Assembly: GCF_026571515.1 (NCBI RefSeq)
Contig: NW_026853943.1
Coordinates: 62,001-126,000, forward strand
Origin: Ruditapes philippinarum
Taxonomy: Eukaryota
Length of the DNA: 64,000 bases
Direction: 5' to 3'
Shown: in pieces, positions 32,715 through 57,445 of the stretch
Layout: the number at the start of each line of letters is the position of its first letter
How positions within the stretch are numbered: the stretch's first letter is position 1
Program-made: the position numbers and the translations under genes
The notes under the pieces: generated by a model
Databases searched by the model: none
What the model saw: the letters and a program-made list of their open reading frames with translations, nothing else
Told to the model about the DNA's origin: nothing

Positions 32715-35700
32715 TTACAGGTCGTCAAATACATTCTGAGCCTCTTCAAAGTCAATGGCTATGCCTTCCTTGGCAGCCCTCATTAGATCTTGCAATAAAT
32801 CCATATTTGACGCTCTTCTGCCATCTTTGTCTATATTTGACTTCCATTGGTAAAGAGCATAAAACTTCTGATATCTTTCGTTTTCTGGATAGTTTTCTTC
32901 TATCTTCTCAACTGGAACATCCTGCATTCAATTATGATATAGAAATAATGTTTTGCTGTTTTATCATAATGTAAAACTGCTTATGAAATAGCTTTTATAG
33001 ACACCTGTCTCGTTTTTATATTGTTCTGATGCATATAAACTCTCAGCAGAGAAAATTAAAGGAAACCGAAACAAACAATGTGAAGAAGGCTACCTATTTT
33101 TCTCCAACTTAAAACTAAGCCATGCTGAAAAGGTTTTTGAGCTATTGATGCATTTAAGCATGTAAAATAGGAGGTGTTAAGGATCTTTACTTATAAAGCC
33201 ATTCTCCTAAAGTTTCCTATATATAATGAACTGTAAAAACATGGTTATAATGACGTGTATAAATATATTTGATATAAAATAGCATAAACAAATTAGTATG
33301 GAAGTTTTAAACCTTGACATTCATAACTTTCATCAGCCTTTTCCAGTCTTTCCCGATAGCGTTTGTCAGTCTCGACAATGTTTTCTCTGTAATATGCCTA
33401 TGCTTCACCTCTTCAGGTAATCTTACGACCCATGTATCTAGATAAGCGCAATTATCGTTTCTTAGATAAAAGTTTTAGCAAATTTAGAAACAAAATCCTA
33501 TAAAAATATTTTTTTTAATTATTTCTATAAGTACGACAATGTAATTATAATTTATTTAGTTTTCGTGTTCCTCCAATAAAATCCAAATGAAAAATATAAT
33601 AAATTTTAATTAATAATTTTCTATTATATTAAATAAAGATTAGAAAGGCAAGCCTTAAAATTATTACTGATCGCTTTATTTTTTAATCATAACTTGAAGT
33701 AGGAACATAAATACCAAATACACTTGGACCTTCCAAAGGAATGCCTCGAGGTATCTGAAAATAAATGGAATATAAATATATCAATTAATAAAAAGTGAAG
33801 TCATGACAGATAATGTACACTGAATAGCAATATTCTAGAAGGATAATCATTGAATATTACCTTTCCATTAAACCATTCATGAAGCATTTCGACTGGCTTT
33901 AATGAGTGTGGGTCAGTTTTGTCCGAGTGCTCGGCACAGAAGAAGTCTGTTCCTACAGCATTTAATAGGTCCTTTTCATTATGCAACCCTTCCTCTAAAA
34001 TATCGTCTTCCGTCGTTTCCTTGCATTGTAATTCATAAGAAAAATAGCGTGCTTCCTCTGAACTTTGTTCAACTTGAAAACGCATGAACTCTTTCTTCAC
34101 AGCCGATGTTATGAAGCGACGAACTCGGTCACAAATATTTGAATCAACCATACCTGCTTTCTTTGAACTGTATCTTGTTAATCGCAAACCAATTTTTGAT
34201 TGTCTGCTAAACAGATATAGTCTATGAAGATCCTCTCCTTTTCCGTAGTTAACCTCAAACACAGCACAACCACAATACATCAACATCTTCTTTCCGTTCT
34301 TAGCTATTGGCCACTTGCCTATACACAATGCTACAACACGGTAGAAGATTGCTGGAGGCATAAAGTCATTACAAAAGCTCAAACACAGAACAGGTGTACT
34401 GAACGATCCAATTCTTTCCTGCTTTTGTAGTAAGGTGATTGGTGGGATTTCTTTGAGCATACATGGAACGTAATAAAAATCCAGTTTCATAGCAGCTTCC
34501 CCATCTTCAGTCAGTATTGATGCTATTGCAATGATATCTAGTTCCTCCAGAACATCAAGAAGAAGATCAGAATTTTTTAAAAAGCTATTTTCCTCATCCA
34601 ATTTCCAAATTTGCCTTGCAAACTCAGGTGTGAGTCTTCCATTTTCATTGAATTCTTCCCATTGACTCTGTAAATTTCCATACTTTGTTCTAAAATCTGT
34701 TGCGCCAATGAGACTTCTGAAGGCATTTATGATCCATTGGGGTTGCAGAATGATGAACTTGTTTAATTTGTCAGAATCACCGAAGTGGATGATAGAGCCC
34801 GTATCATGATGCGCCTTGAGGAAAATCTGAAGCTGTTTTTTTTCTTTCAAAGGACTTGCAAGTGTGTTATCAAGTTGTACAAGTTGTTTCATAGTTATAA
34901 ACTGTTTCCCCTCTAATCGCTTCTCATCAAGAACTTGCTCGAGTTCAAGCCATTTAGCTGGAATCAATTCTCCCCAGTACGGCATTGTTTCTGAGATAGA
35001 TAATATTGTATCTTTCAACCTTTCTAACTCCTTATCTTCTATTGTATTGTTTAAAAGGAAAAATTCGTGCCGAATATTACTTAAGTGTGGCGATCCTTGG
35101 AAAACGTTTCTTATCTTTCTAAAATACATATTTGCCTTAACTGTTTTCTCTGAATCATTCTGAAAGAGATAAGCAAATCATGACAGCTTCATAAATCACA
35201 ATTGTTTTGAGTTTGCATCAACATACAAACGTTACGTCCCAAGCAGCGTTCTTATAATTCTTAACATTAAGTCCTTATATCAAAAAATATCAAATGTATG
35301 CATGCTTTTAAAGATGATTTTCTTTAAAAGAAAATTGAAAAAAGGAAAATAAGAACAAAGGCAAAAGACTTTTTGTATTTAATAGAATTAAAATTTTATA
35401 GTCAACTACATGTATATTTTTAAACTTAAAGTAATCAAATTAATCAAATGATAAAATTGCAGAACAGAAAATGTACCCCTGTGAGTTTGTCGCTATGTGT
35501 ACCCACAATTACGATCGGAGGTATGCCATACGACGATCCTTTTGCGTATGTGAAAATAGATCTTAACCAGAAGTTGATACCACCTTCAATAAACAGAAGT
35601 TGCAAAATTATGTTGTTATTTCTTGTATGCATTAATCGGCTTTATTAACATAGCCAAATGAACACCTTAAGGGTCGCTCAACACTGGAAAATTAGAAAAT

Positions 35701-57000: not shown

Positions 57001-57445
57001 CATTTGTTCTGCCATTAAACTATCCGGGGCACAATGGGTTATTGTGATTCTTCGTTCTGTATGTACCCATTGATCAAAAGCTAGATCTGTCAAATTAAAT
57101 GAAAAACAACATTATTTAACAACAATATAAACATTGTTTGAAGAAATTACCACTTTAACAGTATCAGGTATCACCAAACGCTTGGAATAAATTAAAACAG
57201 GGTTATATAAGTATAAAAATCATTTTATAACTACATGTTATTCAATCGCTTCAGAAAATATAATATCGTAATGACCCAGCCCCAATCCGTGAAAAAATCA
57301 TTTACATGGATACGCCCCTGGTTTATATAAAATAATTGCAAGTTACTGTATACTGTACAACATTTATTTTAATATACTAACCGAGATCCTCCATGTTTAT
57401 AGAGGTCCCATCAAGCTTTGTCATTTCGTTGTCAATATCCATCAT
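48014..57445 (-). CDS. Pseudocaspase-Roc-COR-death domain protein, paralog B (about 1128 aa, 16 coding exons)
   Basis: Exons 57445-57382, 57086-56986, 56772-56635, 56383-56206, 55598-55521, 54899-54820, 54562-54469, 53963-53712, 53529-53210, 51764-51653, 51296-51105, 50714-50608, 50426-49128, 49014-48975, 48674-48550, 48220-48014; 3387 nt; 13 of 16 exons are the same length as in paralog A. Motifs VYPITRYVRGRVLLLSN, DSFVVIIYG, NAPLLRGKPKLIYVIGDD, TLKKEFYFFPG, GLYGAGKTS, WDFAGQ, GTHGDK, then COR and death domain. Confidence 0.9.
52010..53075 (-). mobile_element. Helentron/HINE-like intronic element with about 150-170 bp tandem units and (GACG/GACT)n microsatellite
   Basis: Repeats of ctgccatc(t/c)a(c/t)ccatatttcaagtttcataaaa and gccatagcaacca; gacggacggactgactgacagacg at about 52802. 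Confidence 0.6.

Follow-up and report, generated by a model that had tools for sequence, protein, structure and literature searches.

The caspase homologue cFLIP-L (CFLAR) consists of a caspase fold without the catalytic cysteine, fused to death-fold modules, and forms a heterodimer with caspase-8. The human Roco protein DAPK1, in turn, carries a Roc-COR module followed by a C-terminal death domain (DD) (PMC4104024); it has a second signalling domain N-terminal to Roc and a link to cell death. For Roco proteins in general, a GTP-dependent cycling between monomer and dimer has been described (PMC5714945, PMC11052575). Here, we describe a tandem pair of paralogous genes from the Manila clam Ruditapes philippinarum, termed gene A and gene B, which lie on a stretch of 64,000 nucleotides (contig NW_026853943.1, positions 62,001 to 126,000, in the following called the window). 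Each encodes a polypeptide of ~1130 residues which is composed of an N-terminal extension, a dead caspase fold, Roc, COR-A/COR-B and a DD.

The order Roc, COR, DD is that of DAPK1, as a first reading of the window made from the letters alone (the sequence-only reading) had pointed out, and the similarity is confined to Roc-COR and the DD. Where DAPK1 has an active calmodulin-regulated kinase and ankyrin repeats, the clam protein has the dead caspase fold; Pfam gives neither a kinase nor an ankyrin match in the gene A product (P0157), in which the caspase-like domain occupies that place. In addition, ~150 disordered residues are inserted into the clam Roc and split it. cFLIP has two N-terminal death effector domains (DEDs), no GTPase and largely intact loops, whereas heavy trimming has affected the clam domain, and the C-terminal DD, ~800 residues away, serves as the death-fold module. 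No DED is found by Pfam in the clam protein, and its N-terminal 55 residues match no family. LRRK2, LRRK1 and the bacterial and archaeal Roco proteins (C. tepidum, M. barkeri) differ in their flanking domains, since the clam protein has no leucine-rich repeats, ankyrin repeats, kinase or WD40 domain.

A survey of lophotrochozoan apoptosis genes contains passages on one caspase with a ROC pro-domain in Owenia fusiformis, and its authors consider there that such cases may be prediction errors (PMC11463336). As in the clam, Roc and caspase occur in one predicted polypeptide of a lophotrochozoan. In Owenia, however, ROC is placed N-terminal to a caspase of the CARD-type 'caspase-Y' clade, the case is limited to a single species, and the passages concerned mention neither COR nor DD. 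The clam fusion has the order caspase-like, Roc, COR, DD, contains a dead caspase, shows spliced joints and occurs in six genera. Pro-domains listed in a survey of bivalve caspases are CARD, DED, DD and DSRM, with no Roc among them (PMC7836458). TIR- and Death-ROCO proteins were reported from the Aplysia immunome (PMC9334734); these are likewise molluscan Roc-COR proteins with immune adaptor domains and belong to the same broad family, with no caspase-like domain reported. In the literature, we found no description of the ordered caspase-like/Roc/COR/DD dead architecture, of a pseudocaspase joined to a Roco protein, or of a specific 'pats1' in bivalves. The sequence-only reading knew of no characterised caspase-Roco fusion. 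This stands for the ordered dead architecture, which seems to be undescribed although the sequences are public. It does not stand for the sequence as such: RefSeq already contains gene A as a model without a name, and the Owenia ROC-caspase has been mentioned in print.

The DNA of the window is AT-rich (G+C ~31%, animal) and contains an assembly gap, a run of N at 61545-61973. Both genes lie on the minus strand and comprise 16 coding exons, gene A from the ATG at 57445 to the stop at 48014 (open frame of 1128 residues) and gene B from the ATG at 43410 to the stop at 32715 (1133 residues). The gene B product is 85% identical to that of gene A, the exon phases are equal in both genes, and blastn of the gene A half against the gene B half yields twelve conserved blocks in unchanged order. 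Exon borders were set by splice signals, by conservation between A and B and by collinear matches to database proteins. The resulting gene A model is 100% identical over 1128 residues to the RefSeq protein P0157 (uncharacterized protein LOC132738466, Ruditapes philippinarum). All introns are GT-AG with the sole exception of a predicted GC donor (gcacgt, 35940-35941) at gene B intron 11, the gene A counterpart of which is GT (gtatat).

Every motif named in the sequence-only reading was found on the minus strand at its place in both paralogues. The seven small 5' exons join the P-loop exon in phase in both genes as proposed, and the junctions claimed for this step, 54469/53963 and 39945/38253, were both re-derived. 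Its list of exons was incomplete, as a 40-nt microexon between COR and the death domain had been missed. In gene A, this exon was included because the phase requires it, the linker matches Mactra and the other orthologues, and the model then equals P0157. The exons are as follows, where joints refer to contigs of the sequencing runs X1 and X2.

Gene A exon 1, 57382..57445, minus strand: N-terminal extension, ATG at 57445, gttagt donor; joint 57382/57086 in an X2 contig
Gene A exon 2, 56986..57086, minus strand: N-terminal extension with the ITITHC motif; joints 57382/57086 and 56986/56772 in X2
Gene A exon 3, 56635..56772, minus strand: caspase-like beta1-alpha1-beta2 (VYPITRYVRGRVLLLSN), L1/Arg loop deleted according to the alignment; joint 56635/56383 in X1 and X2
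Gene A exon 4, 56206..56383, minus strand: caspase-like core, YGT in place of SHG, GKPKLIY; joint 56206/55598 in X1 and X2
Gene A exon 5, 55521..55598, minus strand: stands for the QACRG loop, no Cys, DPDFLSVST; joint 55521/54899 in X1 and X2
Gene A exon 6, 54820..54899, minus strand: caspase-like helix GFNGIMFYIF, kept in gene B and in Mactra P0153; joint 54820/54562 in X1 and X2
Gene A exon 7, 54469..54562, minus strand: final caspase-like strand KKEFYFFPG, family-invariant; joint 54469/53963 in an X2 contig
Gene A exon 8, 53712..53963, minus strand: Roc G1 P-loop GAGKT and switch I STDGID; joint 53712/53529 in X1 and X2
Gene A exon 9, 53210..53529, minus strand: acidic Ser-rich disordered insert within Roc; joint 53210/51764 in X1 and X2
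Gene A exon 10, 51653..51764, minus strand: end of the insert; an X1 contig has a loose end at 51652 that runs on into the first letters of exon 11
Gene A exon 11, 51105..51296, minus strand: Roc G3 WDFAGQ
Gene A exon 12, 50608..50714, minus strand: Roc G4 GTHGD
Gene A exon 13, 49128..50426, minus strand: COR-A and COR-B
Gene A exon 14, 48975..49014, minus strand: 40-nt linker microexon (IPRGIPLEGPSVF) between COR and death domain
Gene A exon 15, 48550..48674, minus strand: death domain, first half
Gene A exon 16, 48014..48220, minus strand: death domain, second half, and stop codon
Gene B exon 1, 43350..43410, minus strand: ATG at 43410
Gene B exon 2, 42914..43014, minus strand
Gene B exon 3, 42597..42734, minus strand: caspase-like (VYAITRYVRGRVLLLAN)
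Gene B exon 4, 42169..42346, minus strand: caspase-like core, FGT in place of SHG
Gene B exon 5, 41827..41904, minus strand: DPDILSVST
Gene B exon 6, 40738..40817, minus strand
Gene B exon 7, 39945..40038, minus strand: KKEFYFFPG
Gene B exon 8, 38002..38253, minus strand: Roc P-loop
Gene B exon 9, 37449..37771, minus strand: disordered insert, ~50% identical to gene A
Gene B exon 10, 36393..36519, minus strand
Gene B exon 11, 35942..36133, minus strand: Roc G3 WDFAGQ, followed by the GC donor (gcacgt)
Gene B exon 12, 35477..35583, minus strand: Roc G4 GTHSD
Gene B exon 13, 33861..35159, minus strand: COR, Pfam COR-A 2.1e-14, 94% identical to gene A
Gene B exon 14, 33715..33754, minus strand: linker microexon
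Gene B exon 15, 33313..33437, minus strand: death domain, first half
Gene B exon 16, 32715..32921, minus strand: death domain, second half, and stop codon

About 20 sequencing runs, all from one organism, share 36-53% of the words in the 9.7 kb of gene A, which is approximately its exonic share, and four runs were mapped on the 5' part of the gene (window positions 51550-57500). Contigs of X1 and X2 show exact GT..AG joints (on the gene strand; CT..AC on the plus strand) at nine consecutive gene A junctions, i.e., those listed above from 57382/57086 to 53210/51764, while the depth of the intron bins is near zero. The decisive junction 54469/53963, which leads from the caspase-like part into Roc and its insert, is crossed by a 786-nt X2 contig that spans exons 5-9; the joint has a depth of 42, with 94 letters on its shorter side. 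The claim of a single pseudocaspase-Roc-COR-death domain architecture is thus borne out by one spliced mRNA, and the architecture is conserved.

These data bear directly on the question whether a pseudocaspase gene and a separate Roc-COR-DD gene, arranged head to tail, were merely merged by gene prediction or read-through. One could argue in this direction from the single 5' exons, which have no Pfam match, and from the unrecorded library type of the runs that carry the joints. Against it stand the single contig over exons 5-9 with exact GT..AG joints and empty introns, the agreement of the exon phases in both paralogues, and the same collinear architecture in six other proteins of five species and in a third paralogue. 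Moreover, there is neither a stop codon nor a start context that would divide the caspase-like part from the Roc part. An annotation artefact is therefore very improbable and largely refuted.

Within intron 9 of gene A, a segment at window positions 51948-53141 behaves differently from the rest of the locus. It is a very high-copy repeat with a summed contig depth of 1,000-48,000, and raw RNA reads, among which variants and loose ends are frequent, cover it 80-350 fold. The segment probably represents a transcribed transposon family.

The Roc, COR and death domains, which had been described as intact, all pass the Pfam cut-offs in P0157: COR-A with 1.6e-14 (54.4 bits, cut-off 35.3), Roc with 1.8e-11 (44.7 bits, cut-off 27) and Death with 2.2e-5 (24.9 bits, cut-off 22.6). 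Roc is directly followed by COR in both genes, which defines them as Roco genes. The Roc motifs GAGKT, STDGID, WDFAGQ and GTHGD (gene A) or GTHSD (gene B) are intact, and the G1, G3 and G4 motifs are invariant in the family. Between switch I and G3, Roc is interrupted by the acidic, Ser-rich insert. This insert is disordered in both AlphaFold models mentioned below, with a predicted local distance difference test (pLDDT) score below 50, and evolves fast (ratio of nonsynonymous to synonymous substitution rates, dN/dS, of 0.35). The C-terminal helical bundle is modelled at pLDDT 70-90. By profile comparison, it matches the DDs of FADD (6.8e-11, with the family profile headed by the gene A protein), RIPK1 (2.1e-7) and CRADD (2.1e-6).

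For the N-terminal domain, the relationship to caspases is best seen in the orthologues. The protein of Potamilus streckersoni (P0004) gives a full-length match to Peptidase_C14 (7.8e-20, 72 bits), the Sinanodonta woodiana proteins P0151 and P0003 also exceed the cut-off (1.2-1.4e-5, 25.4-25.5 bits), and these caspase-bearing orthologues align collinearly with the domain of gene A and gene B. When the five caspase-like exons of the clam were scanned singly against Pfam, no Peptidase_C14 match was obtained, because the exons are too short and too divergent. A profile headed by the gene A protein matches solved caspases over the whole domain with 1e-14 to 1e-12, caspase-3 at full length with 9.6e-13. 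A profile of three short-type proteins alone, without the Potamilus protein, matches an ancestral effector caspase with 1e-7 and caspase-3 with 1.6e-5. Among language-model neighbours of residues 50-245, Peptidase_C14 accounts for 29 of the 30 nearest Atlas clusters.

Structural comparison is in good agreement with these results. In the AlphaFold model of the Mactra protein, the caspase-like domain is modelled at pLDDT 70-90 at residues 64-200, and Foldseek returns, below the Roc-COR matches, caspase-11, caspase-2, cFLIP-L (3h13), caspase-4 and CED-3 (E 4e-6 to 2e-5, probability 1.00). The P0157 model, built from six sequences, is poor overall (mean pLDDT 52.6) and retrieves the same caspase set; caspase-1 and drICE are found with both models (overall E 4e-6 to 7e-5, probability 1.00). 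Both models have the cFLIP structure 3h13 among their best caspase-fold matches (5.7e-6 and 3.7e-5), so that the earlier comparison with cFLIP holds at the level of the fold. With VIA-align and the whole 1146-residue model, only Roc-COR and GTPase structures were among the matches listed, because one domain occupied the list; caspases surfaced only with Foldseek. Taken together, the orthologues, profiles, Foldseek matches and language-model neighbours establish homology between the N-terminal domain and caspases, and the models and alignments predict a caspase/hemoglobinase fold with p20-p10 topology in the clam proteins.

The description of this domain as a 'full' caspase skeleton in the sequence-only reading has to be restricted, since the fold is present and three loops are deleted. 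The L1 loop with the first S1 (P1-binding) arginine is missing in a gap of ~23 residues. The QACRG stretch is deleted in genes A and B, and there is no cysteine at that position. Finally, the loop with the second substrate arginine (341 loop, L3) is absent. Both loops with S1-pocket arginines are missing in the short-type proteins, including those of genes A and B, and the catalytic histidine (SHG) is replaced by tyrosine in gene A and phenylalanine in gene B. Potamilus P0004 retains the loops; its dyad positions are occupied by Tyr and Asn. By alignment, the clam caspase-like domain is catalytically dead.

A few Cys and His residues are left in the domain, which leaves room for the idea of a cryptic active protease that uses other catalytic residues. 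These residues lie off the dyad and are not conserved in the family, with the single Cys of Sinanodonta at another position, and the arginines of the S1 pocket are deleted; we regard this possibility as extremely improbable. The domain is not decaying. The caspase-like core evolves with dN/dS 0.13 at dS 0.83 between gene A and gene B, and YGT.D, GKPK and YFFPG are invariant across six proteins, and the dead domain is under purifying selection.

Another reading takes the domain as an internal regulatory or structural module without any link to caspase pathways. Such a module could dock on Roc-COR like the N-terminal repeats of LRRK2 and serve another Roco process (trafficking, cytoskeleton), while the DD would be a general-purpose tag for oligomerisation. 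With the loss of the substrate groove and of both Arg loops, no caspase-like ligand recognition need persist; in addition, the most conserved motif, YFFPG, sits at the Roc boundary, and various functions outside apoptosis are known for human Roco proteins (PMC5992104, PMC6337361). On the other hand, a caspase fold and a DD of the FADD/RIPK1/CRADD type in one protein point to death-fold signalling, and the fold resembles cFLIP-L. We therefore consider a purely internal role quite unlikely.

The distribution of the architecture was studied with the COR exon, which was searched against 1.84 billion cluster representatives, and with additional searches of the N-terminal domain, which added proteins. 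At E<=1e-3, the COR exon matches 1433 cluster representatives, of which the best full-length matches are bivalve proteins. Orthologues collinear with both window genes, exon by exon, were found in five species (six proteins), where they are annotated as hypothetical or 'PATS1-like' proteins. Their identity to gene A is as follows.

Mercenaria mercenaria, P0156: 76%
Mactra antiquata, P0153: 58%
Mya arenaria, P0152: 47%
Sinanodonta woodiana, P0151: 39%
Potamilus streckersoni, P0004: 32%

In Potamilus P0004, the Roc insert contains two hydrophobic, transmembrane-like stretches (residues ~470-520), whereas it is acidic and disordered in the clams.

The word-indexed searches with the N-terminal domain returned only 3 to 5 proteins each, so that the family range given here is provisional. 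A local hidden Markov model of the caspase-like domain, run on the 150 best Roc-COR relatives, found no other carrier. In a tree built from the C-terminal half, the branching mirrors the species relationships, and orthologues are one-to-one across deeply diverged bivalve lineages. Since the trees follow the species, the fusion predates the split between unionids and venerids, mactrids and myids.

Compared to the four Roco genes in humans, the Manila clam set is a large expansion: its genome contains at least 55 loci above the Pfam COR-A cut-off. The caspase-like exon 3 is present in only three genes of the genome, all on this contig, which on exon matches marks them as the only Roco subfamily of the Manila clam with a caspase fold. 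The third paralogue, gene C, lies on the plus strand at contig positions ~141100-153200, 15-27 kb past the right end of the window. Its Roc, COR and DD exons are present; identity to gene A amounts to 66% in exon 3 and 48% in COR, and the DD exons have their best match in the Mya arenaria protein.

Genes A and B themselves have a composite history. Their 3' halves (47831-50439 and 32514-35172) share 86% DNA identity, introns included, with dS 0.15-0.26, as compared to dS ~0.85 in the 5' halves. In the tree of the N-terminal domain, A, B and Mercenaria are not separated, whereas A and B group together at 100/100 when the C-terminal half is used. This likeness of the 3' halves together with the conflicting trees makes gene conversion of the COR-DD half likely.

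Putting the domains together, we propose that the clam protein is most likely an adaptor of death-fold signalling under nucleotide control. It would be unable to cleave substrates. Via its DD, it would be recruited into a DD oligomer of the FADD, RIPK1 or CRADD type, and Roc-COR would switch between monomer and dimer, or between an open and a closed state, depending on whether GTP or GDP is bound, as in bacterial Roco proteins and LRRK2. Depending on the nucleotide state, the dead caspase domain may be exposed or paired and thereby engage a partner. Most plausibly, this partner would be a true caspase, in analogy to cFLIP with caspase-8, and caspase activation might be either promoted or blocked. 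The architecture and a role as nucleotide-regulated death-fold adaptor, taken as one statement, we hold to be on balance probable. The mechanism on its own, in which the dead caspase domain binds a partner under nucleotide control, is argued by analogy and is put forward tentatively. A more far-reaching version, in which heteroconch bivalves possess an ancestral GTPase-switched death or immune hub whose loop-stripped dead caspase captures caspases or their inhibitors in a nucleotide-dependent manner, strikes us as rather doubtful. If true, it would be a Roco counterpart of DISC/cFLIP (death-inducing signalling complex) or of NOD-like receptor (NLR) decoy logic, and would tie Roco GTPases directly to the control of caspases.

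A related interpretation takes the proteins as NLR-like Roco immune sensors, with Roc-COR as the switch, the DD as output and the dead caspase as integrated bait; pathogen caspase inhibitors, host inhibitor of apoptosis proteins (IAPs) or a protease would bind or cleave the bait and thus trip the switch. Close bivalve Roc-COR relatives have SH2-EH or NHL ahead of the core and Death, TIR or HEPN_DZIP3 behind it. As the end domains are swapped among relatives, the Roc-COR core presents itself as a platform for domain shuffling, which fits a sensor family, as do the large family size given above and the invariance of the active-site remnant (YGT.D, GKPK) in a non-catalytic domain. For bacterial conflict systems, Roc ('AP-GTPase')-COR switches that are combined with variable effector domains have been described (PMC8195603), and ROCO proteins were proposed as brown-algal immune receptors (PMC11378527). 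Furthermore, two palindromic kB-like sites (GGGAAATTCC) are located at 57781-57790 and 57811-57820, 30 bp apart and 336-375 bp upstream of the gene A ATG, and a third site (GGGAGATTCC) at 47329-47338 lies between genes A and B. The window holds 5 matches to the kB pattern as opposed to 1.0 expected, where palindromic sites are counted once per strand, and all of these sites are consensus matches only. An arms-race bait would hardly be expected to show just three paralogues, the slow and conservative evolution of the core (dN/dS 0.13) and one-to-one orthologues across deeply diverged lineages. A sensor with bait is thus unlikely in our view, and the adaptor in death-fold signalling is retained as the preferred interpretation.

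Several observations weigh against this adaptor interpretation. In P0157, Peptidase_C14 (PF00656) remains below the Pfam threshold (E 0.008, 16.3 bits as compared to a cut-off of 21.4). The last caspase-like strand (residues ~214-242) is of low confidence in both AlphaFold models, and therefore the classical dimer interface is absent from them. A predicted homodimer of two copies of P0157 residues 50-245 scored 0.02, a value which is not evidence for or against binding. A cFLIP-like pairing is not guaranteed, because the deleted loops include parts that caspases use for heterodimer activation. On the transcript side, X1 and X2 are not recorded as RNA runs and are taken as RNA because their contigs are spliced; raw reads of the recorded RNA run X21 cover gene A 1-4 fold, with no joints listed. 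For gene B, expression and the use of the GC donor are predictions, the latter made because the frame is open only with that donor.

How Roco proteins derive their output from the nucleotide state of Roc-COR is still debated for LRRK2 and DAPK1, and pseudocaspases like cFLIP hold a key position in the regulation of cell death. With its dead caspase and DD wired to Roc-COR, the clam protein would offer a simple and tractable natural model for both fields. This clade escapes standard caspase surveys, as the domain is sub-threshold in Pfam and RefSeq lists the protein as 'uncharacterized'. In aquaculture species such as Manila, hard, surf and soft-shell clam, the protein is a candidate regulator of hemocyte death and immunity.

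Two further open frames of the window were inspected. The 321-residue frame at 4723-5688 on the minus strand matches no Pfam family at E<=0.01 and no exon peptide of gene A by tblastn. The 416-residue frame at 22859-24109, also on the minus strand, encodes a class 3 lipase domain (Pfam Lipase_3, 1e-35) and a Cys-rich N-terminus and is unrelated to the fusion genes.

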